Shown piece after piece: positions 230 to 20,193 of a stretch of DNA of 20,193 nt (positions within the stretch are counted from its first letter, which is position 1; every line of letters begins with the position of its first letter). The stretch spans positions 1 to 20,193 of the forward strand of contig JBHGNT010000576.1 of NCBI GenBank assembly GCA_043228905.1. Reading direction: 5' to 3'. The notes beneath the pieces were generated by a model that saw only the letters and a program-made list of their open reading frames with translations, ran no database searches and was not told the origin of the DNA. Source of the stretch: Azolla caroliniana. Its lineage: Eukaryota; Plantae; Polypodiophyta. Position numbers and translations under genes: made by a program.

Positions 230-3200
230 CTAAAATAATTAAAAACAGAAGCTTTCAAAATTTGTCTGCAATTTCAAGCACATGTAGTGGAACCAGTCCA
301 TCAATATTACGATATATAAATATGTGAGAAATAAATCTTACATCCACAATAAATTCTCACCAAAGCTAGAACTTTTGACTTGATTCTGGAGATAAGTGAT
401 ACAAGATACTTCGATTCAGTGAGCAATATTGGCAACTGTAATTTCAAGGCAACTAATGCTAGACGTAGGAGTCCCCCATGCTTGCACAATTCCTGAATAG
501 ATAGAATAGTTCAATGTTAACATCATCCAAGGTGTTGATTTTAAAAAATCATTACCTACTATGCCAGTCAAATTTGCGTATGATAACCCTTGGACAAAAA
601 CATACAACTTTGCGCAAGCCAAAAGAGATTCATATTAACAGAAGCCACAAAAGTATTTCAGTTAAGGCCCCAGCAGCCCCCAGCAGGTGAACCATAGGAG
701 GTAGCCCAAGGAGCTTGATTTCACTACCAATCAAACTCAGTCATTCCTGGCTCAGGGAATACCTTCAGCATTTTGGGAAAGCTCAGAAATACCTATATGT
801 TCGTAATATTGGGTTTTGTTTTGTAGCAAAAATAATGTGTGTAAATGTTGTTTACGCATACCATGTGTGCAAGCACTCGATCGCGGAAAGCAATTGGTTG
901 ACTGAGAGACTGTAAGACCTGCACAGAAGCTTCACATTGCTGTGCTATTACTTGGGCCATGCTTTCTGCTACAGCTATAGTCACTTTGTTTGCCATCAGT
1001 TTAGCATTTAATATACGGAGTTTGGAATGTAGAAGTCCAATTGCTCTCCTCACTGCATCAAATGCTACATCCATGAAGATGTCGACCTGCAAGATGCAAT
1101 TAAAAATAAAAAAGGAGTTCAGGAAAGGACGATCAACTCATATAACAATGTTCGGTCATTATAAACTTTGCCCCCTGAAGAACAGAAACAGACATTTACA
1201 AGTACATCTAATCTTCCCTTTTGAATACACAGAACAAAGGTGAACGGACAATCATTGTTCCCATCATATATACAGCATTATTACCAGAGCAGGCGATTCA
1301 TAACATAACCAAAGAACGAACTTCCATAACTTGTTGATAGGAGATGAGAAGGAAATTGAGGAAGAAGGGAAAGAAGAAAAGGGAAACTTTTGATGGTTCA
1401 ATCTTTCTAGCAGTTGAAACATAGTTTATTACATCATTATACATCCTAAATATTACACCGAGACAGTTTGTTAAAAGAATAACCTTTTTGACAAACTATA
1501 TGGAAAAGATTACATCTAACAAGGAAGAATGAAAGAAATATTAATGTCTTTTAAGAGGCTAAAATGGCCTATTAGACCAAACAAGACATTACATCTTAAG
1601 TGTAGTCTCGTCTTTGAGAACAACAAACCAAAATAAATGCTACTAAGTAAATAAAATAAAAAGTGACTAAAGAATCTTGTTATCAGTACATTCAAGATTC
1701 TCATGTCAGATATATTGCAATTTTTGTTTTCGAAAGATCTCTAGCATATGTCGACCCAAACTGGAGAGGTCTCTGAAGAAAGGGAAGCAATTAAGATGGC
1801 AGGAGATAATGGCCTTAATCTGTCAATGAGGAGGATGGTGAGATAGTGGTTGATGAGGCTGGGTCTACATGCATAGAAAATTGCGATTGCTCAATCTATT
1901 ATAACCCCTTTGCTATGTCATGGTCAGGAGGCCATTTGTGTAGCCCTTCATTGCGTTGTAACATGAGTGGGAGTGATGGGGTAAAGAAAGTTGTGATTGT
2001 TCTTTGTTGATAAGCTTGTGTGGTTGTATTGTTGTCCCTCAACAACTTTTCCATGTGTCTCTTGAGTTCTAGCAAGACACCAAGAACAGTTGGTCCTCAT
2101 ATTCCATTACCTTGCCTAGTGGGTCAAAGCCTTGCTTAAAGAAGAAAGAAAGAAATATTGATGTCTTTTAAGAGGCCAAAATGGCCTATAAGACCAAACA
2201 AGAGATTGCATCTTAAGCATTGTCTCATCTTTGAGAACAACAAATCAAAATAAAATAAATATTACTCCGTAAATAAGATAAAAAGAGATGAGGGAATCTG
2301 GTTTTTGGCACACGTGAGATTCTCAAGTTAGGTATACTGTAGCTTTTGTCTTCGAAAGATCTCTGGCATAGGTCGATCCAGAATAGAAAGGGGCAAAGGT
2401 ATCTTCCTCTTATTTCATAAATAATGCTACAATTCCACTCCCTGATGACATCATTGGCAAACTCTTCCTTCTAGAGGTATCTGTGCATATCTGTCTTCCT
2501 CAATCTCTAATTGATGTGATGAAGTTTGCAACCACCCTATCACATTGCACATTGCATAGATAGATGTATGTCCATATAAGATGGTCTGATGATGAATCCA
2601 TCCTTTGACGTGTGTACCAAGTGATATTTTGGGGTTTATCCATGTTATTTGTTTTCCAAGTCAATAATATCAGTTCTGATCACTCTATTTTTTTCCACTT
2701 TGGTCATGTTTAGATGGGGACAATCAAGGCTATATTGGAACAGGGGTAGTGCATGTACATTTATGGCATGTGGCTCAAACAGTTGTTGAATTGCAGCATA
2801 CTAACAATGAATATCTCCATGTTCAAGAAGTTGTTTTGATGACATAAGTGCTAACATTGAATACCTCTGTTTAGGGAGCTCCCAAAGCCGTTGAATACAG
2901 ATTACTGATCGGAATAATGCCTCGATGGTTATAGGGCTGCTCTCGTATCCCCCTGGATTATATCATGGGACACCGATGCTTTGCTCCTTATCATGCGGGC
3001 AATTATTGAGACTGTAAATTTTTCTAACTATTTTATTTGTTAAGACTCAGGTTCCCACGTTTCTACTCAGTAGAAAAGAGTTGGTGTGACAAGTGTATCA
3101 AATAGCCACCATTTAGTTTGTGGCTCTTGGAACTGCAAATGTGCACATTATCTTTCAAGAGCACCAAGGGCTGCATATCCGCAAGAAACTCGCTGCATAT

Positions 3201-6200
3201 CCGCAAGAAACTCAACCACAAGCAGCCTGCCATAAGGAGAACCTAAGCCCTGAGAATGTTATTCCTAGGTATGAGTAGGAGTGTGTGTATGCTACCTTTT
3301 CCTCTTCCAAGAAGAATCCAGGTTCTGATCTTGTTACCATGCTTGAGTGGTGTTAAACACCATCGACAAACCCCATACAAAATACTTTTAAGGCGTTTAG
3401 ATGTCTTTGTGGTCCATTCAGAGAGTTGGAGATCAGCATAATAACATTGTCATACAGTAATAATTGTATGTCTAAACCTGCTAGGCATGCTCCCAAATTC
3501 CCGAATCTCTCTATGTAATATGATACCTCATCTATATAGAGACCGAAGAGAATGGGTGATAGTATGCAACGAACCTAAATAACTAGGTGTGGATGAGTTC
3601 TTATTTAGTAGTATCTGAAAAGTCTGAGGAGACATAGCATTCAACCTTATTGTTAAGTTCATGTTCCTAAGATGACATTGTTATAGAAATCTAGCAAACC
3701 TAGATTAAGCTTTTCTATATTTGCATTCAAACATAACCCTAATTTAGTTAATTAAAGAATTTAACAAATTCATTTGACATATTGTTAATAGTTCATGGAC
3801 TTGTTCTTTAATGAGAACAATCAGCACATTGTGAATGAAATATCCCAGACTTGTGTGCCTTAACTCTACTATATACGTCTCGTATTCTGGAAACCAACCT
3901 GGTTCTCGTTACAAAGCAGAATGTCCAAGTTACTACTTGAGTACAGCCTCTGTAATCATGTCTTTTTGTCATGTTCTTGATTGCAAATATGGACAATCTC
4001 AGCCAAACAGCATATAATTGCAAACCAATTGAAAAAAAAAAAACACCAATAATATTATCAGTGTACTGAAAAATATTACCTTAGGGTGTGCCAAAAGTAC
4101 AGGCACAATCTCTACCCACTCTGCCGCTACAAATGCAGGAAGTAGATGAAGCGAGCAAGCAACAAGGGATGTATGCAGCATTATGGTAGAATTTCTAACT
4201 CTATTACCCTGGATGCATTACAACAAACAACTTGAGTAGTGCTATTTATAGCTTAAAAACTCAGCACAGCATACAACCATGATTATATGCACCTGCTGTG
4301 GGCCTGCTAGAGTTATAAGTGTGTACACAGTAAGATCAATAATTTGCTGCCTTATCATAACATCCTGAAGAAATATCTGCAAGACACCAAATATGCTTTC
4401 AGAAGTCAGCAATGTAAATTTTTGCATCACCGTCAATTCTCCAAGTGAGATATTCTCAATTGGTAGTTGAGCTGTAAAAGATAAACTAGATTCAAGCCTT
4501 TCCTCCATTAGTAGTTAGATATCTGTAAAATAGAGTAATAATATGAAAGAGAAATAAAAATTGTATGGTTAAAAAAATTTGTACTGCATTGTTAGAATAA
4601 GAGGTAAAATTTGATAGTATTTTACTATTCAACTGTTAATGAAATAAATAAAACTGTGTTTTAGCATAGGTGCACACAAATATAATGCTGTTCTGGAATA
4701 TGAACTCTTATGGAAGTCCAGAGAATAATTTCAGATATCTCAGTGAGAACTTTGACTCTAAATGATGGGTGGATATAAGAGTTTATGGTCTACATGCAAA
4801 GTAGAAATAAAATTCAGGAAAGTTGTACACAACATTTCTCTATGACTATTTGGCCAAGGTTATGAATTCTTCGACATGCAATGAATAAGCATAGTATATC
4901 TTGCATGCGTTGAAGTTCATTTGGCCCAAAGTACTGTTCGACAAGGCAATGGCATCTTCTCCTTATCGCATAGTAGATTGTGAAATGAAAACATAATACT
5001 CCTCTAATTTCAGGTCTGTGTTAGCCTGTGTAAACAGTGTAAATCTGAGGTGCAGTATTGTATTGCTGTTAATTCATGAGTCTACTCCCCACTAAGCTTG
5101 CTCGGTTCACGCAGTTCATACAGAAGAAATCCATCAGTAAGAGACAAGAGCAGAGACTTCCCAGGTAGAAGGTTGCTCATACTGCCATAACACCCTTCTA
5201 GGCAGCATCAATGGCAGGAAAACCTCAGGTAATATAGATCAAGTAAACCTTAGGGTATCCTAGTGGGTTCTGTCTGTATGTTGTAGTTTACAGAATAAGG
5301 AGATTCGAATAGTCACCATTTCGGCAGATTATGATAAATACATAACTGAAACCCATGGTGATCTAGACAAGAGCCATCAACAACATTGCCATTACATATT
5401 TTATTGTGTGATATAGTCACGAAAAGGTGTTTGATGATACATTCACAGTTCTATTTTGTGCTAGCCATAGCATGCGTGAATAATTTATAACAAGCTAAAA
5501 GAAACTGTTACTGAGATTACCTGATCGAGCTTAGGGTGGCGGAGAGAAAGGTCGCTGAGAGAATGAAGAAGGCGGACACCACGTAATAAGTAGCGCAATC
5601 TACATTCAGATGCTCTCATAGCCACACAAGCCAATAAATGCAAAGGAAGGCCTACAACCAGTTGTTGCAAATCGACCTATTTTTCAAGCATGACTTATAT
5701 GTGAGGACTCAAACTAAAAACTACATTTGAGAATAAAAGTCAGAAAGAACTTCAATCTGATTTCTCACTCTAACAAAAATGCCTCGACCAGTTCTCAGTC
5801 GTAAAGTTAACAACCGTGGTGAGTCTTTTAATAGCTTATAGATTTCTTTTGCACTCAAATCATGAAGTTCTTCAACAGCTCCAAAAATATCAATAACCTG
5901 CCATGATAATTGTTTCATCAGAAAGATTCTGTAAGCACAACATGCATTACCAAGTTACATTTTTGAAAGTTTAAAAATGTAGATCTTTGGATGCCTACAG
6001 GGGAAGTTGAACAAACATAAAATTGTAAATCAAATTGAAGAGAATGGATAAACAACGAAACCCAAATGATGGGGGCAATGATTAATCCCTTCCTTTCTGG
6101 ATCGACCTATGCTAGAGATCTTTCGAAAACAAAAGTTACAATACATCTAACTTGAGAATCTCACATGTGCTGAAAACCAGTTTCCCTCGTCTTTTTTTAT

Positions 6201-7625
6201 CTTATTTACTTTTATATTTACGGAATAAAATTAATTTTATTTTGATTTGTTGTTCTCAAAGACGAGACAATACTTAAGATGTAATCTCCTGTTTGGTCTT
6301 ATAGGCCATTTTGGCCTCTTAAAAGACGTTAATATATCTTTCTTTCCATTCTTTTTGTATGTTTTTCATTTTCATATAGGGGATGTCAGCCAATATAACA
6401 GTATACCTTCTGCAATAAGTGGATGATAAAATGCAAATTTCATTCTACTTAAGACCTTATGAATGAGTCAATTATCCTTTTTGGGGGGTACAACCACAAA
6501 AGGCATGTCAAATCATATTGTGAATGGGTATTACACATTTACTTATCTTAAATCTACCTATGCTTTCTCCTCAACCTGACAAAGGCATCTATATCAATGT
6601 AGAGTCATATATAGATCTCAAATGAGGCAACCATAATACCAAAGTTTATAATACAGTTCCTTAATGAAATATGCTACAGAATGCATTGACATGGGGATGC
6701 ATCCAGATCTATTCAGACAATTTGTAACTCCACCTCCTGAAATATGGCATTTTCCCCTGTGTCAATAATTTACATATATGGGAAATGATCTATTGATCAC
6801 ATTCAACTGGATATGAACCTCCTACAATCTAGCTAGCTACACAATATGCTTATGCATACACAAATAGATATATCTGACGTTTTCATACATAATCATATGC
6901 TTTACCTTCATCCCAAAGAAATATCAAGTTTCTACATTCACTTAAAACGTCCTTATAGATTATAAAAACATCAAAATAGCCTCAATTTTGCTACAACATA
7001 AAGAACCCAACCTACTGAAGATATTTAATATACTGACCACATTAAATCGGCATGGAATCTTCTACTCTTGCGTATACATACAGAAATTATTATTCATATT
7101 TTTTCCTTTCATAAAAAAGGAAAACATGTTTCTACAGTTTCTTGAAATACCACTATAGCTAATTAGAATATAAAGAAAGATAACAATTTGTTACCACATG
7201 AAGAAATCTAAATGTAAAGATCTGCCTATTGATCACATTCAATTGAGATTTTCTGCCTAGCAATAGGATAGGCATAAGCATTGCATAAATATATATACAC
7301 ACATTATTAATTCACACATAATGACATTAGAAAAAAGCATGTTTCTATAGTCAGTTAACATATCCCTAGAAAAGATGAAAGTATGTAAGATTCCCCCAAT
7401 TTACTGCAACATGTAAGAATCCAATGATGGGATCATCTGCAGATAGACTAGTACAAAAGATCCGATTACTTAATAGACAGATCGCAATCTGACAGTTAAC
7501 ATAAGACTGAAAATAAATTAAATGAAACGAAAAAGGAAAAAGGAAAAAGAGAAAGAGAAAGTCTTTTTTCTCGTTGTTCATATAGATAGACTGACCTTGC
7601 AGAGAGAATCTTTCTCGTAGCTCAT
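134..7625 (-). CDS. NDX: NODULIN HOMEOBOX (NDX) gene, 5' part. Spliced CDS: complement join(7596..7625, 5769..5897, 5521..5676, 4293..4376, 4080..4208, 862..1086, 361..492, 134..229). Continues beyond the left edge.
   Basis: Eight exons with GT-AG boundaries join in frame (981 nt, 327 aa, no stops). The peptide follows the remembered Arabidopsis NDX N-terminal domain in order: AVEELHDLSAKEIYKLLKDS, LPLHLLA..RYLLRGVRLLHSLSDL..HPKLDQ, LVACSLHL..VLLAHPK|VDIFMDVAFDAV, QQCEASVQVLQSL, ELCKHGGLLRLA, SRIKSKVL, CETESVSFLDE. The homeodomain is not in the window. Confidence 0.93.
361..492 (-). CDS. NDX: NDX exon 7 (ELCKHGGLLRLA...KSKVLAL)
   Basis: Acceptor ATTCAG|, donor TTG|GTGAGA, 132 nt. Confidence 0.92.
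862..1086 (-). CDS. NDX: NDX exon 6 (VDIFMDVAFDAV...DRVLAHM)
   Basis: Acceptor TTGCAG|, donor ATG|GTATGC, 225 nt. Confidence 0.92.
2138..2386 (-). mobile_element. ~250-bp LINE 3'-end copy nested in the older LINE, same orientation
   Basis: Reverse complement runs TTCTGGATCGACCTATGC...CCTCTTAAAAGACATCAATATTTCTTTCTTTCTT and splits the host element between EIRGRYxC and FKQGF. Confidence 0.88.
3170..3213. repeat. Perfect 22-bp tandem duplication inside the LINE
   Basis: GCTGCATATCCGCAAGAAACTC occurs twice (3170-3191, 3192-3213). Confidence 0.95.
4080..4208 (-). CDS. NDX: NDX exon 5 (GNRVRNSTIMLHTSLVACSLHLL...VLLAHPK)
   Basis: Acceptor ATCCAG|, donor AAG|GTAATA, 129 nt. Confidence 0.9.
4293..4376 (-). 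CDS. NDX: NDX exon 4 (IFLQDVMIRQQIIDL...AGPQQ)
   Basis: Acceptor TTGCAG|, donor CAG|GTGCAT, 84 nt. Confidence 0.88.
5521..5676 (-). CDS. NDX: NDX exon 3 (VDLQQLVVGLPLHLL...HPKLDQ)
   Basis: Acceptor AAATAG|, donor CAG|GTAATC, 156 nt. Confidence 0.92.
5769..5897 (-). CDS. NDX: NDX exon 2 (VIDIFGAVEELHDL...GRGIFVR)
   Basis: Acceptor TGGCAG|, donor AGA|GTGAGA, 129 nt. Confidence 0.88.
6095..6346 (+). mobile_element. ~250-bp LINE 3'-end copy in NDX intron 1
   Basis: Closely matches 19738-19990 from TTCTGGATCGACCTATGCTAGAGATCTTTCG to TTAATATATCTTTCTTTC. Confidence 0.9.
7596..7625 (-). CDS. NDX: NDX exon 1 (MSYEKDSLCK)
   Basis: ATG at 7625-7623, in-frame TAA 15 nt upstream, donor AAG|GTCAGT, phase 0 matching exon 2. 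Short and not homology-supported. Confidence 0.65.
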
Positions 7626-13138: not shown

Positions 13139-13378
13139 TTAACTAATGGAACTCACTTGCTTCGACAAACGTTTTATTTTCTCATGTTGCCTTTCATCAT
13201 TCAAGCTAAGAAGACAGCACGTTGTGAACATGTTATATCGTGCTTGAAACAATAGCCTATTTTGCACTAGTTCCTCCCTTAGCAGAATTACCCCAAAGAC
13301 CAACAAAAGAATGACACCCACAAGAATAACTGGATTTCCAAGCCATTGTACGATGACTCTAAAGACCACCGGCGTTTG
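13139..13378 (-). CDS. TMC-like exon I (QTPVVFRVIVQWLGNPVILVGVILLLVFGVILL...; TM10 and C-tail), probably the last coding exon
   Basis: Acceptor TTTGTCAG|, TAA at 13141-13139. A consensus donor CAA|GTGAGT at 13157/13156 makes the true end uncertain. Confidence 0.8.
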   Translation of the reverse strand, partial: QTPVVFRVIVQWLGNPVILVGVILLLVFGVILLREELVQNRLLFQARYNMFTTCCLLSLNDERQHEKIKRLSKQVSSIS

Positions 13379-16300
13379 CTGACAAAAAAGAAAGAATGAT
13401 GGGAAGCACTATCAATAAAAAAGGAGAGAATTTTTTGAGTTTCATATACCACAGTGACACAGGAGAGCAATAATATATTACAACACACAAACATCTAAAT
13501 GAAGTACCTCAATGTAGCTCGAGAGGGTTTGATACATGGAACTGTCCTTCATAATCGGACCACATACTCCACTGCTCTTTTGTACCAATGTTACTGATGC
13601 AGGTAGACTGCATAGTATAAGCGCTAACAGCAGAAGTCCATGCGTAAGATTAGAGGTTCTTGATGCACTATATGGATTCTTCATAGGTCCATAGAATTGT
13701 CTCAAAGAGAACTGCCATGTTATAGAAAAAGAAGTTAATGACGAACACTAATCATAGCAAAAACTAACATGCATCACAAATATAAAATAAGACAATAATT
13801 TGAAGTAAAATACAACTACATGAAAATGAGAAAGTCATTGAAGGTTATAGAACTTTGCTACGCATACGATTTAGCAAACTTTAAGCATTCAATAATAAGA
13901 ACTTGCAAAAAGCTGCATGCTACTTGCCTTCATGTAAGAGAACGTTATAAAGTTGCAAAATAAGCCAAGAAATGCTGCTACTGGGCTGAAGGAAGAACCA
14001 ACCCAAACTAGAGATTCAATATAGACAATATCAATCACCAAATTCTCGATTGAAAGTTGTCTCCGAGCCTGTAAAGATTTAGAACTTGTGTATGTGCATA
14101 TATTTATTGACATAAATTGTGCAATGCATATTATTCCCATAAATTTATGCCGTCACCAGCTACTGACATGGAAAAGCTTTTTATAGATGAGTCCATAGAA
14201 AAAGTCGCACGCAATGTTTACGACCGTGCCTGTCAGTATCAATCGCAAAAGTTGTTTGGCAACTGCATTCTCCATGCATCCTGGCATGCACACATTTCCC
14301 TGTGACATGAAAAAAAATGAAAACTCATATCATGGAACATAGTACACTTTTTACTAAACTCATAGATCTCCTACACTCTAAAAAAAGTTTCATTTCTCTA
14401 TGCATGTAACCTGATCCAGTGTGCAAAAGACCCATTCATTTCCTCCTTCAAGATTGCAGCAAGCAAAACCCTCAGGGCAAGCCTTATGAGATTTACAGCT
14501 CAGTATTTGGTTTCCAGAACGTACATATGTTGCCTGTGCAAGAGCCATATATAATCTGAAAGAAAACCGTATTTCATATTTACTTAGAATTACATGAATG
14601 AAGTGTGTTACATACATAGTACGTAAAATTCGTGTTCGTCTAGTATAACATTCGTTTTCCTACGTTGGAAAACGAATGCGAATGTTATCCAAACATTCTT
14701 GTGTTTTTTTTTTGTTTTTTTCCCATTTTTTTAATGTTTTTTTTGTTTTTTTTTTCATTTTTAGGCTTATCTACCTCATAATAAATAGTTAATCCAAAAG
14801 TATGATATTTATCATTCTTTGAGGGTGTTTTTCTTTCGCGAATGTTTGAATCATTCGCGAATGCGAATGCACGTATGTTACGTATGGTTCATACTATGGT
14901 TACATATAATAGCAGCAATATATTATAAAGAAGGTACTTCCAAAGGTATTGCTGCTTTCTCTCTTTTTTAGTAATGTAGTTTCATAACTTTCTAATTTTT
15001 CCTCTCTCTGCAACTTGTTTTCTAGAATTCCGAGCTACAGTTTAGCCTCAACTTACCTAAAGCCCTTTAGTCTATATGTGGACATTCTTTGATTTATAAC
15101 TTGTGCTCGAGTTTACAACATATTGCATCTATCACATTTCTATTTGTAAACATATGATGAAGCGATAGCATGATAGGTTAGGATAATAGGTTAGAATAGA
15201 TCACACACAATGGGTAGCAACAGGCACGGCCTGAACTTATTATTAGGGATGTTATGATGATGAATGCTAAGGTCATTTGAGTCCCTTTTTAGAGTAAAGT
15301 GTAAAGGAAGTAGTGGAAATGGAAAAGACCTGGCAAATAATGTACATACATTCACCAATCTCAAAGAAAAAAGCTTCACTAGTACAATATGTTCAGACTT
15401 TGCAGGAGTCCAGTCTTCTAATTTAACAAGGAAAGGAATCGATAATGGTGATATCATGCTTACTGCCGTCAGCAGTATGGATTGAGCATAATCTGTCTCT
15501 GTGTATGTAATAAAAAAGTCATCAATAAAGATGTAATTCCATTCAGCCATTTAAGAACAAACTTTCCTTTTCAGTGACTTACTGAGCTTCTTGTTGACTC
15601 TATCACTTTGTGAAACCAATGCAATGACAATTGCCACATTTCCAGCAATTTGTAAAGGCCACAAGACACCTAAAGCTATGTATCTCTGCATAAAGATTAA
15701 AGTTGTATTAAAAATAAATCTCAGGCTGCCAAAAAATACAAAAACAAAATTGACTTCCACTTAATGGAAGGAGCCAAGCATCTTTCGAAACAAGTTTCAA
15801 CCACACATTAGTGGAGACTAGATATATTAAGCAACATCACATGGCGCATGATGTTAGGATCTGAATTGTTGAGATTGTGCATCCATCTTCTGATCAACAG
15901 AATTTACCATGTAGTCAAGCATAGGTGCTAAGGAAAAGGAACACAATGTTTTCTATATTGAAATTTGTTTTCGAAATTTTAATCAATGAATTTTATTTCA
16001 GAGTAGCTTCTCCCCTCCTCTCTTTCCTTGCATTATAGACCTCTCTTTATCTTCTTTTGGTATGGATAAAACATCCCACAAATTTTATATTAGCTAACCC
16101 CCCTCCATCCTAAATCATGCAATCTCTCTACCCATATCTTCCTTTGAGAGTTTTTGAAATTTTCTGTCCTATGCGTTTTCCACAATGCTCGCTCAATCTC
16201 CACATTCCTGCCCTCTGTATTTTGTTACAAGGTTTACTTAATCTAATGTCTGTGTTTCTGCAGAGAGTTTTCTCAATCGTTGTGTTCTTGCCTTCTTTGT

Positions 16301-18117
16301 TTTTCAGCAAGGTTTACTTAACCTAATCCTCGTGAAGCAAATGAAGATATGGCTCACAATACCGATGAAGATGGACTACATTACATGTGCATGTTCCATT
16401 ACATGTCAAAGAAGGGAAAGACGACCTCTTACACCATTTAACAAAAAGACATCAGAAGTTTTGTAAAAAGATTAAACTTACAACTCAAGGATGACATGGC
16501 GAAGTATCTAGAGGATGAGGTGTCCTTACATAAGGTCAAACTAGTAGAACAATTAGAGTTGACTTATGAAAAGAACAAGTGGAAATCGAAAAACGTGTAT
16601 CCATAGTTAAAGACAATGTAAACATTGGAAAGAGATGGTCAAAGATACCAAAGCTCGAGCCGAGCATGTTGAAAAAGAAATTAAACTACTTGTTCCTTGG
16701 ATAGAGGTACTGAATAAAAAGGAAAACCAATGGATAAGATAGGAATGATGAGGGCTACATTAGAAGAAGATGAAGACAAAAGGAAAGCTCATGCATTACA
16801 TGTACAAGTTGTAGGTTGGGCTCAAAAAGAAAGCCCACAAGAAGATGCCAAGAATCTCAGAGCAAAGATCAGGGCATCAAATATTCCATTTGCTTTAGCA
16901 TGGAGTGTGGGAAGCCTTGACCATACATTTCATGGATATGAAAAAGAAAAAAGCTTTCCTTCCAAGAGAATAGAATAGATTATCCACGAGGAGGCCAATG
17001 TTGTCCTATGGGTTACAATAGATCGAGAAATAGCAATTTTTCATGCATGTAACCTCTGCCCCCCAGGACCATGATCTCATCAACATTGTCCTTGACAGAC
17101 AAATAAGCTGAAAACTCCCGTTCCGTTGATAAGACACAATTATCTCCTGCAATCATAGGTGTTTCCCAAGCTTTGAAGTTCTCTCCATTTTGGAGCAACC
17201 TATGCTAAAGATCTTCCGATTTCATAGATAACAGGACTCTTTAGTCACTTTTATTTCAAAGACAAGACAACATTTTAAGATGTAATCTCTTGTTTGGTCT
17301 TATTAGCCATGTTGGCCTCTTAAAAGACGTCAATATATCTTTCTTTCTTCATCTTTCTGTTTCAAATGTCAATGCATCACTATGAATTCACAATAGATTA
17401 CTAATACAGATATATTCTTTTCTGGGTTCCAATAATTGTGGCATATAATCCTTGTTGTAGGCTGAAAACAAAGTTTCTACGTTCTCAACAGAAACATGTG
17501 CTGCAGTCACATGTTTGACTGTAATTATAGTTCTAATGTGAACTAGATATGTTATAAAAAAATTTATTTTGTTTTAGGTGTAAACAATTGCTTCTCTTGT
17601 AGAGAAATCTGCTAGCTAAGACTTGTGGCATATAATCCTTGTTTAGACTTAAAAATGAAGTTTGTATATTCTCAACAGAAACATGTGCTGCAGTCACGTG
17701 ATTAACTGTAATTATAGTTCGTTTATGTCAACTTGATACCTTATAAAGCTTTGATTTTGTTTTAGGTGTAAGAAATTGCTTCTCTTGTGTAGAGACATCT
17801 GCTAGCATTTCCCGAAAACGCATCCGTATGCCCTTTCGTAATCTTGATGCTGCCTGCGCAATTCAAGAGAAGCTATATCATTTATGGAATAATATACAAT
17901 AGATAGTCTTTATATATACCTTCACTAAATTTTCGAAGTAAACCCCTGATAACAGATATTTTATCTCACAATGATAGGAAACTACTACAGGACCAAACTT
18001 ACATCCATTGATTTTATACCGAAGTCCCACGATCCAAATACTGCTGTGCAAAATGGATGTGTCATGGTACCAGATGAAATCAATATTTTATTTGTAACAT
18101 TGAGCCTTTTTGTTATT
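13139..18117 (-). CDS. TMC (transmembrane channel-like) family gene, 3' part. Spliced CDS: complement join(18003..18117, 17740..17853, 15583..15685, 15330..15498, 14411..14555, 14168..14299, 13928..14068, 13508..13711, 13139..13378). 5' exons probably lie beyond the right edge.
   Basis: Nine exons join with consistent phases (entry phase 2, then 0,0,1,2,0,0,0,0) into about 453 aa with no internal stop. TMC hallmarks occur in the expected order: FCTAVFGSWDFGI (cf. VFxSWDY), SMISP..LEDWTP..KLFSLRLVN (cf. GMFCP..LEDYHP..RIFALLLGN), CMENAVAKQLLRL (cf. CWETxVGQExxRL), LVWVGSSFSP (cf. MIWMGSFFAP), PYSASRT (cf. FKASRS), SGVCGP (cf. PSxxCGPF), and a final TM after WLGNP. Confidence 0.88.
13508..13711 (-). 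CDS. TMC-like exon H (FSLRQFYGPMKNPYSASRT...SGVCGPIMKDSSMYQTLSSYIE; TM9)
   Basis: Acceptor TGGCAG|, donor GAG|GTACTT, 204 nt. Confidence 0.88.
13928..14068 (-). CDS. TMC-like exon G (ARRQLSIENLVIDIVYIESLVWVGSSFSP...FSYMK; TM7-TM8)
   Basis: Acceptor TTACAG|, non-canonical donor AAG|GCAAGT, 141 nt. Confidence 0.87.
14168..14299 (-). CDS. TMC-like exon F (GNVCMPGCMENAVAKQLLRLILTGTVVNIACDFFYGLIYKKLFH; TM6)
   Basis: Acceptor TCACAG|, donor CAT|GTCAGT, 132 nt. Start of the TMC domain. Confidence 0.88.
14411..14555 (-). CDS. TMC-like exon E (LYMALAQ...CKSHKACPEGFACCNLEGGNEWVFCTLDQ; Cys-rich loop)
   Basis: Acceptor TTTCAG| (phase 2), donor CAG|GTTACA. Confidence 0.82.
14615..14898. mobile_element. 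284-bp hAT-type MITE in the TMC intron between exons D and E
   Basis: Perfect 8-bp TSD GTTACATA (14607-14614 and 14899-14906). TIRs CATAGTACG / CATACTATG. Repeated subterminal CGAATG/CATTCG motifs and a T-rich core. Confidence 0.88.
15330..15498 (-). CDS. TMC-like exon D (TDYAQSILLTAVSMISP...LEDWTP...LRLVNVCTLFA; TM4-TM5)
   Basis: Acceptor ACACAG|, donor CCAG|GTCTTT (phase 2). Confidence 0.88.
15583..15685 (-). CDS. TMC-like exon C (RYIALGVLWPLQIAGNVAIVIALVSQSDRVNKKL; TM3)
   Basis: Acceptor ATGCAG|, donor CTCA|GTAAGT (phase 1). Hydrophobic helix. Confidence 0.85.
16330..16980 (+). mobile_element. Probable decayed LINE ORF1 remnant
   Basis: A charged, coiled-coil-like stretch is followed by KAHALHVQVVGWAQKESPQEDAKNL...AWSVG and, after a frameshift, ALTIHFMDMKKKKAFL. 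This resembles the RRM/CTD region of LINE ORF1 proteins. It lies directly upstream of a LINE 3' end on the same strand. Confidence 0.5.
17010..17350 (+). mobile_element. Diverged LINE 3'-end copy with internal deletions
   Basis: From GGGTTACAATAGATC (cf. 19594) to GGCCTCTTAAAAGACGTCAATATATCTTTCTTTCTT. Confidence 0.85.
17436..17806. repeat. Diverged tandem duplication of ~183 bp (17436-17616 and 17623-17806) spanning the 3' half of TMC exon B and its donor
   Basis: Both copies run TTGTGGCATATAATCCTTGTT...TTCTCAACAGAAACATGTGCTGCAGTCAC...TTTTGTTTTAGGTGTAA...AATTGCTTCTCTTGT...ATCTGCTAGC. Confidence 0.92.
17740..17853 (-). CDS. TMC-like exon B (AASRLRKGIRMRFREMLADVSTQEKQFLTPKTKSKLYK)
   Basis: Acceptor GCGCAG|, donor AAG|GTATCA, 114 nt, phase 0/0. 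Confidence 0.82.
18003..18117 (-). CDS. TMC-like exon A (ITKRLNV...HPFCTAVFGSWDFGIKSMD)
   Basis: Acceptor TACTAG| (phase 2), donor GAT|GTAAGT. Missed by the ORF track. Contains the SWD motif. Confidence 0.87.
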
Positions 18118-18542
18118 CTAGTATAAAGAAAGGCAAATGGACAGTTTCAGTATTAAGACATTAAAAGGAGTAGTTAAGGCTACTAATTTCATAAGTTTTT
18201 AGCATTTTTATCATCATTTTTATCCCCTTTCGTATGACAGATGTCCAAGGTACCAAAATGCACATGATTCGTACAATGATTATGGGGCTTAGGATTGATT
18301 GAAAACCCAAAGAAAGACAGAGATTCCCAACATTTGAAACCATCAACAAATACTTTGACGAGTTCCCCTAACATAAAAAAAGTTCAGCTTTTTTAATTTT
18401 GTGCTTTCAGAATCATTTTCACTTGCCTTTTGCCAATTCATGCATGCCTTTCCTGACATATGTACAAAAAACTTAGTTCATGAGGTGACAGTGCAAGACT
18501 TCAAGATGTATGAAGTACTAATTGGTAAGAAAGAGAATTGAT

Positions 18543-20193
18543 AGAAAGAAAGAAAGCAGAGACAAAACGACTTATACAACCAAACAACATATTACATCTT
18601 ACAATCTTTTCTCATCTCTGAGAACAAAAACCAAAATAATTAAAATTGAACATATGGTACTAAATAATCTACATATCTAAGAACTTGATTCTAAACTTAG
18701 ACCAAAACTTTTATCTTCAGAAAATCTCCGACTTGAGCCACTCCACGAAAGAGAGATTCCAAAGCAACAAAAGCACCTTCGGGATGGTGACAATTGGTCT
18801 TTACATGTTGCTGCTAAGTTGGCTGTAGTTCAGATGGTTGTGGCCTATATGCATAACACATTGCTATTGCCTGACTATTGTAGCCCCTTTTTGAGTGTCT
18901 TGGTCAAAAATCCACTTGCATAGTTCTTGATTGACTTGTACGATGTGACGGAGTGATGTGGCTAACGGAGGTCGTGATTGATCTCTGTTGCTGACCTGTT
19001 GTGATTGTATTGTTTTCCTTCAACAACTTTTTTCTATGTCTCTTGGATCAACCCCAAAATATCACTTGCTACGAAAATGGCCCACTAAAAGACACTTCTT
19101 ACACACATCGGAGGATGGATTCATCATCAGGCCACCTTATATAGACATACATCTATCCTATGCTCTGCGCAATGTGATATAGCAGCTGCGAACTTCATCA
19201 CATCAGGCACAGATTGAGGTAGGCAGATATACACAAATAACTCTAGAAGAAAGGATTTGCCAATTGTGTGTCATCAAGGAGTGGAATCCGAAGAACACTA
19301 TGTTTGTCACTATAGTGTCTTCTATGAAATCAGAGGGAGATACCATTGCCTCTTTAAACAAGGCTTTGGCCCGCTACACAAGGCAATGGAATATGAGGAC
19401 CAACAATGCCTAGGAGTTTTCATGCTAGAACTCAAGAAACATAGGGAAACGTTGTTGAAAGACAATAATACAGTCACACAAGCTCATCCACAAAGAACAA
19501 TCACATCTTTCTTTAGCCCCATCACTCCTACTAATGCTATACAAGTCAATCAAGGGATACACAAATGGGCTCCCAACCAGGACATAACAAAGGGGTTACA
19601 ATAGATCAGGCAATAGCAAGTTGTCGTGCATCTAGGCCCCGGCCCCATGAACGATGACCTCAGCACCCTTGTCATCGACAAATAAAGGCCATTATCCCAC
19701 CATCGCAGGTGCTTCCCTCACTTCGGAGATCTCTCCATTCTGGATCGACCTATGCTAGAGATCTTTCGAAGACAAAGTTACAATATATCTAACTTGAGAA
19801 TCTCAAATGTGCCAAAAACCAGATTACCTCGTCTCTTTTTATCTTATTTAGTTTTATATTTACTGAGTAATATGTATTTTATTTTGATTTGTTGTTCTCA
19901 AAGACGAGACAACACTTAAGATGTAATCTCTTGTTTGGTCTTATTGGTCATTTTGGCCTCTTAAAAATCATTAATATATCTTTCTTTCTTCTTTAAGCAG
20001 GGCCAAGCACCTTCGGCCATCTTTTTTCATGATCTTGCGTAGCAGGCCAAAGACTTGTTTGAGAAGGCAACAATATCTCCCTCTTATTTCATAAAAGACA
20101 CCAGAGTGTCAAACATAGTGTTCTTCTGCTTTCACCCCCCAAAGTAACAATTGGCTTATCCATTCTTCCAGAGGTTTGCGTCCATATCTGCAT
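18543..20193 (-). mobile_element. Old, diverged LINE of the same or a related family (18543-19044 plus 19995-20193), interrupted by a younger antisense copy. Continues off the right edge.
   Basis: Minus strand reads AEEHYV*HSGVFYEIRGRYCCLLKQVFGLLRKIM...RCLALL on the right, resumes with KRHRKKLLKENNTIT...QRSITT on the left, and ends in a TTTC tail at ~18543-18556. Confidence 0.8.
19045..19994 (+). mobile_element. 5'-truncated LINE: ORF2 C-terminus with zinc-knuckle remnant, 3' UTR and TTTC tail
   Basis: QLRTSSHQAQIEVGRYTQITLEERICQLC/(frameshift)HQGVESEEHYVCHYSVFYEIRGRYHCLFKQGFGPL is the CCHC-type C-terminal motif of non-LTR ORF2. Ends ATATATCTTTCTTTCTTCTTT. Confidence 0.9.

Follow-up and report, generated by a model that had tools for sequence, protein, structure and literature searches.

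Plant TMC genes and the Azolla locus

With regard to previous reports, one Tmc gene each was recorded by Erives and Fritzsch from Coccomyxa, Klebsormidium, Marchantia, Physcomitrella and Selaginella, and these carriers were set against a fern and seed-plant clade, with the proposal that TMC function is precluded by rigid walls; clear Tmc duplications were confined to Choanozoa (PMC7003098). Selaginella and Coccomyxa have also been listed as TMC carriers (PMC12806904), and Viridiplantae have been listed with TMC (PMC5868767), so that a land-plant TMC is already published (2019-2022) and is not new in itself. In this study, a TMC gene was investigated in a 20,193-nucleotide stretch of the fern Azolla caroliniana (assembly GCA_043228905.1, contig JBHGNT010000576.1, positions 1 to 20,193), the whole of which is referred to as the window. 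Comparison with its relatives identifies the gene as the fern "clade A" copy of a vertically inherited streptophyte TMC gene. The fern TMC, occurring in two old paralogues, a streptophyte cysteine module and a plant pattern of pore acids all appear to be undescribed.

The literature searched, mostly without subscription papers, yielded no functional study of any plant TMC and no mention of a fern TMC. This agrees with a first-pass annotation of the window, which knew of no functionally characterised land-plant TMC and suggested that the system may have been overlooked; the latter word is justified for function and for ferns, but not for land plants as such, in view of the reports above and of the UniRef auto-label "TMC domain-containing protein" on the fern clade A orthologues, which are known as database entries only. 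No paper was found for the Ceratopteris gene identifiers, and no expression record for these identifiers or for TMC terms turned up in the literature searched. Again, the label "hearing-channel-type" is acceptable at the level of the family, but TMC1/2 are not nearer relatives of the plant gene than TMC3-8, because the Tmc duplications have been placed inside Choanozoa (PMC7003098).

Comparatively, exon-wise protein identity was highest with the fern clade A genes of Adiantum capillus-veneris (KAI5081136.1/GOP47_0004319; 72%) and Ceratopteris richardii (KAH7298936.1/KP509_25G065300; 67%), whose exons are collinear with those of the window, followed by the bryophyte, lycophyte and Coleochaete genes (35-43%), which share the cysteine module and introns, and by an insect-type TMC (25%). 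By these values the genome is that of a fern. Intron positions are shared with Adiantum nelumboides, and both positions and phases with a moss-like contig, indicating vertical descent. Ceratopteris, A. capillus-veneris and A. nelumboides each harbor one clade A and one clade B TMC, the gene of the window belonging to A. Each clade is strongly supported and the two are about 42% identical to each other, their sister relation being weakly supported (69/71). The published single-copy genes of Marchantia, Physcomitrella, Selaginella, Klebsormidium and Coccomyxa are of the same family and lineage, unlike which the ferns, lying outside the reported carriers, hold two paralogues. The clade B genes are Ceratopteris 16G079800 (P0038), Adiantum GOP47_0020491 (P0011) and L7F22_014059 (P0013). 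Additionally, 22 of the 25 coding differences listed in related transcripts were synonymous and three non-synonymous, and the ratio of non-synonymous to synonymous substitution rates (dN/dS) against A. nelumboides over exons 5-9 was about 0.06, a rough value with dS near saturation; by these measures, the gene is under purifying selection.

During distribution analysis, exon 7 was compared with 1.84 billion representative proteins, and 16 matches were obtained with no seed-plant protein among them, though clustering at 50% can hide relatives. The named matches came from Adiantum, Riccia, Diphasiastrum, Sphagnum, Selaginella and Coleochaete, and the TMCs of Ceratopteris and Marchantia paleacea were found by further searches. 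Word-based searches (5, 13 and 2 matches) also disclosed no seed-plant TMC, a weak negative since Physcomitrella, Klebsormidium and other known carriers were missed as well; Ginkgo, cycads and Zygnematophyceae were beyond the reach of these searches and of the 50%-clustered set. The fern genes move the loss of TMC to the seed-plant line, as opposed to the published loss in ferns and seed plants, and two intact fern paralogues despite lignified walls weaken the published explanation by rigid secondary walls. Two metagenome contigs (L007 and L008; P0001) carry a TMC gene that is about 95% identical at the protein level and comes from a close relative of this fern. Two further streptophyte TMC genes, L001 (P0012) and L006, were detected in consecutive sequencing runs; of these, P0012 falls into no named lineage, which may make it useful for the question of TMC distribution.

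Gene model, completeness and family identity

The first-pass annotation had proposed nine exons encoding about 453 residues with the TMC motifs in order, and this structure was recovered. Nine minus-strand exons between 18117 and 13139 (Table 1) join with fitting phases at every junction into a reading frame of 453 codons that is closed by a stop codon and free of internal ones. In this frame, the motifs follow one another at residues 29 (SWD), 137 (LEDWTP), 223 (CME), 281 (WVGSSFSP), 322 (ASR) and 356 (CGP), and the hydropathy profile displays seven hydrophobic peaks. The joined peptide was checked for frame, stops, motif order and hydropathy only; all searches used single exons or full-length orthologues as queries, with the Adiantum orthologue as a stand-in for the full-length tests.

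Of the eight introns, seven have GT-AG borders; the exception, which follows exon 7 and has its GC donor at 13927-13926, is GC-AG, in contrast to GT-AG at the same position in A. nelumboides (L003). All eight introns were seen as joints in transcript-like contigs of related organisms, with the predicted lengths of 149, 2054, 84, 774, 111, 99, 216 and 129 nt. These contigs come from four public runs with four organism labels, two of which contain all eight joints; the runs are presumed to be RNA, and the contigs are taken as cDNA because the spliced joints are present. The TMC stretch was found in 17 runs from seven studies (tissue not given), and transcripts extend past the stop to about 13070. 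The gene is intact, spliced and constrained.

The word "intact" has to be limited in one respect, as the nine exons make up only the 3' part of the gene, the first ~338 residues being encoded outside the window. The window's exons correspond without gaps to residues 339-790 of the 790-aa Adiantum orthologue, and tblastn disclosed no exon for residues 1-338, which include transmembrane helices (TM) 1 and 2, in 18118-20193. A 5'-truncated or decaying copy yielding no full channel would fit this lack of a TM1-TM2 exon in the 2 kb upstream, as well as some contigs that run unspliced from exon 1 into 18118-18371. It is nevertheless very unlikely: fern orthologues possess the TM1-TM2 N-terminal half in genes of 178 and 144 kb, so that upstream exons are expected to fall outside the window; exon 1 is preceded by an AG acceptor of the expected phase, and one of the transcript contigs stops two bases beyond it, where the splice would branch; and purifying selection is strong. 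Over 18097-18371, contigs of two runs read from exon 1 into the upstream intron; an alternative 5' end, a retained intron or pre-mRNA could account for this. Exon 1 has its first in-frame ATG at 18065. A 61-codon open reading frame from 18374 was rejected as a 5' exon, since it ends before exon 1 and has no match in the orthologues.

Table 1. Features of the TMC gene and its surroundings in the window
Feature	Position	Strand	Content
TMC exon 1 in window (the gene's true first exon lies elsewhere)	18117-18003	-	start of intracellular loop 1, SWD motif; corresponds to Adiantum residues 339-376
TMC exon 2	17853-17740	-	remainder of intracellular loop 1, corresponding to the CIB-binding segment of animal TMCs
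TMC exon 3	15685-15583	-	TM3; aligned to the Adiantum orthologue
TMC exon 4	15498-15330	-	TM4, LEDWTP loop, TM5
TMC exon 5	14555-14411	-	outer TM5-TM6 loop, five of the six extra cysteines
TMC exon 6	14299-14168	-	end of cysteine module, CME motif, TM6; Pfam TMC positions 1-34, E 0.057
TMC exon 7	14068-13928	-	TM7-TM8; Pfam TMC positions 51-91, E 2.9e-5; GC donor
TMC exon 8	13711-13508	-	ASR motif, TM9, CGP loop
TMC exon 9	13378-13139	-	TM10, C-terminal tail, TAA stop
Intron 2 (2054 nt)	15686-17739	-	repeat fragments common to NDX introns; 187-nt duplicate of exon 2 end
Upstream intron	18118-20193	-	largely repetitive; lacks exons for Adiantum residues 1-338
NDX neighbour gene (context, separate from TMC)	310-5954	-	four exons found

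As to the family, exon 7 alone reached 25 bits against the Pfam TMC domain (PF07810, covering TM6-TM8), the curated cut-off being 25, and the full Adiantum orthologue scored 47.8 bits over positions 1-111. The OSCA/TMEM63 domains (RSN1_TM, PHM7_cyt and RSN1_7TM) gave no match in the exons up to E 10 or in six full-length homologues up to E 1, nor did the Anoctamin domain (PF04547) in exons or full-length homologues. Against PDB, the sole matches of exon 8 were worm TMC-2 (E 1.6e-4) and TMC-1 (E 2e-4), and no chain matched exon 7 alone; worm TMC-1 was matched by the Adiantum orthologue at E 1.3e-27 and by the plant profile at 3e-44. The AlphaFold model is that of the Adiantum orthologue core and not of the window's own protein (predicted local distance difference test, pLDDT, 62.5; predicted TM-score, pTM, 0.66). 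With this model, Foldseek ranked four worm TMC structures on top (E 2e-14 to 3e-13, TM-score 0.66-0.69), ahead of TMEM16 (E 4e-5 or worse, TM-score at most 0.46) and OSCA (E 2e-3). The Atlas structure search gave a TM-score of 0.84 for TMC versus 0.60-0.63 for TMEM16/OSCA. As modelled, the orthologue has a ten-helix TMC fold, nearer to TMC than to TMEM16 or OSCA.

That the gene might instead belong to OSCA/TMEM63 or the anoctamins is suggested by their membership of the same structural clan, with its shared groove architecture, and by the appearance of TMEM16 and OSCA lower down in the Foldseek list, but neither family has a Pfam match and the E-values of the TMC structures are better by nine orders of magnitude. 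Contamination was considered unlikely in the first-pass annotation, and this stands for a contaminant from an animal as well as for a transfer: the identities of 72% and 67% to ferns versus 25% to an insect, the introns common to moss and the host repeats inside the introns all speak against it. The probability of these origins is next to nil, and we regard them as ruled out by Pfam, structure, identity, shared introns and host repeats together.

Pore, loop 1, cysteine module and candidate function

In worm TMCs, D683 and D695 are adjacent to putative cations, and H731 (human A579) contributes to the tightest point of the pore (PMC9605866); in the mouse, permeation depends in part on D528 and D569 (PMC12075566). 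Residue equivalences between animals and plants were taken from sequence alignments. In the window's exons, the positions of TM6 D528 and TM7 D569 are Gly and Ser, which differs from the hair-cell TMC1/2 pattern. The plant residue aligned with worm D695 is Asp or Glu, so that this acid is kept. Adiantum D610 aligns with worm H731, and this position is Asp in 11 of the 12 tabulated plant sequences, Selaginella being the exception; the codon of the window's TM7 Asp is 14032-14030 in exon 7. Moreover, the Met codon at 15457-15455 (exon 4) lies three residues ahead of a conserved Pro, like mouse M412, and clade A keeps this Met. Loop 1 is among the best-conserved segments, and at the sequence level the plant profile matches the CIB3-bound TMC1 peptide 6wud_B (E 2.4e-4). 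Animal TMC1/2 and C. elegans TMC-1/TMC-2 are alike to the plant protein in fold, helix order, the CIB-binding segment of loop 1, the CWE-type and CGP cysteines, ASR and the second TM6 acid; identity is only about 20%, and in plants the D683/D528 site of TM6 is non-acidic, the H731/A579 site of TM7 is Asp, and the TM5-TM6 loop is short and cysteine-rich.

In all 14 aligned streptophyte TMCs, from Coleochaete to ferns, this loop harbors seven invariant cysteines within about 39 residues, namely the CWE-type cysteine of the family and six extra ones. The module is not found in the insect-type sequence, and worm alignments break off at it. Granulin N-terminal peptides were the best PDB matches for its first half, at non-significant values (E 0.14 and 1.2); Pfam Lustrin_cystein appeared below cut-off in two of the 14 modules; its model is of low confidence (pLDDT 54), and the Atlas matches were below threshold. 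The module lies on the outer or luminal face, and a component of the wall or the lumen may be its partner.

From the family, a dimer may be proposed in which TM4-TM8 of each subunit form one cation-conducting groove, with the pore acidic site shifted from TM6 to TM7. The conserved intracellular loop 1 suggests an EF-hand partner, and a CBL or calmodulin-like protein is the candidate that would dock there in CIB's place; the six-cysteine module would fold via three disulfides and probably bind an outside partner. Two pore-facing acids are kept, and the protein is therefore most likely a Ca2+-permeable, non-selective cation channel, an assignment to which we give about an even chance. Opening or tuning by membrane tension is put at somewhat below even. 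For such gating TMIE and LHFPL5 would not be obligatory, because TMC5 mediates mechanically evoked Ca2+ entry without them (10.64898/2026.09.26.754653).

Several points weigh against this reading. The TM6 position of worm D683 (mouse D528) is neutral in all tabulated plant sequences (Gly, Asn, Ser or Thr), and plant TM6 aligns four residues, or one turn, shorter than animal TM6. TMIE, LHFPL5, CIB and tip links are not known from plants, and TMC7 reportedly acts in the cis-Golgi. Since TMC1/2 also scramble lipids (PMC12236488), and in view of this role of TMC7, the TMC fold does not fix activity. No current, localisation or mutant phenotype of any plant TMC was found in the literature searched, and the structure used is from the Adiantum orthologue (pLDDT 62) rather than from the window's protein.

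The main rival role is that of an endomembrane channel of the endoplasmic reticulum (ER) or Golgi, leaking ions, or of a lipid scramblase, like TMC6/7/8, which would keep lumen pH, ions or lipid asymmetry; its cysteine module would face the lumen and force would have no part. TMC proteins expressed alone remain in the ER, TMC1/2 are scramblases (PMC12236488), loss of TMC7 leads to defects of acrosome biogenesis (PMC11398861), the TM6 pore Asp is lost in plants, and transcripts in 17 runs of seven studies fit a broad expression. We consider this role rather unlikely, as acidic residues are kept at two pore-facing places and loop 1 is strongly conserved. Another possibility, raised in the first-pass annotation, is a channel that serves chiefly in the production or guidance of flagellated sperm or zoospores and is kept only together with such cells; it could be combined with either mechanism and is slightly less probable again. 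All the named land-plant and charophyte carriers belong to seed-free lineages or Coleochaete, the land-plant carriers have motile sperm, and the 16 matches among 1.84 billion representatives include no seed-plant protein. Rozella and Blastocladiomycota, which have zoospores, show a similar picture. They are the only fungi in which TMC is kept (PMC7003098). In the mouse, the spermatid genes TMC5 and TMC7 are required for sperm formation (PMC11398861; 10.64898/2026.09.26.754653). As TMCs with EF-hand partners and without TMIE/LHFPL5, the two mammalian proteins provide a precedent for a role in sperm formation, but they are late, animal-specific duplicates, so the parallel may be chance; the fern gene was recovered in many runs (tissue not given). 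Two carriers speak against the link with flagellated cells. Capsaspora has a TMC and lacks flagella. Coccomyxa subellipsoidea also carries TMC (PMC7003098) and is yet non-motile (PMC5781313).

Taken to its full extent, the mechanosensing reading would make the TMC of seed-free plants a mechanosensing Ca2+ channel that does without animal accessory subunits, has a disulfide module of its own and a pore acid at a new site, is essential for the formation or guidance of flagellated sperm, and was lost with swimming sperm in seed plants. We regard this combination as improbable; if true, a single ancient TMC function would underlie sperm development in plants and mammals alike, and a simple system for TMC gating would be at hand. 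The plant TMC seems to be without the animal partners, making it a simpler test case for TMC gating and for the role of the family before the ear, and knockouts are feasible in Marchantia, Physcomitrium or Ceratopteris. As a possible force-gated channel, it is a further candidate among the mechanosensitive channels of plants.

Neighbouring gene and repeats

The neighbour had been named NDX in the first-pass annotation, and its four exons indeed match Pfam Nodulin_N in order (E 4e-5, 1e-4, 8e-20 and 6e-10) on the same strand as TMC. The LINE (long interspersed nuclear element) insertions said to be shared by the two genes were recovered as repeats common to their introns, 66-90% identical, while their LINE nature is weakly supported, the match to RVT_1 (E 0.06) lying on a different piece in an NDX intron. 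No TMC-NDX synteny was visible in Adiantum and Ceratopteris within 10 kb flanks. A very abundant repeat family, partly like a LINE 3' end, occupies parts of the NDX and TMC introns (17256-17360, 6091-6358, 1496-2623 and 18563-20191), with a depth in the thousands in transcript contigs. In intron 4, a multi-copy element of about 290 nt resembling a miniature inverted-repeat transposable element was detected at 14610-14905; its short inverted ends enclose a T-rich middle, and its high depth in transcript contigs comes from other loci. Again, a 187-nt tandem duplication (17436-17616 versus 17623-17806, 84% identical) has placed a copy of the 3' portion of exon 2 in intron 2, where it is without a GT donor and is not spliced in.

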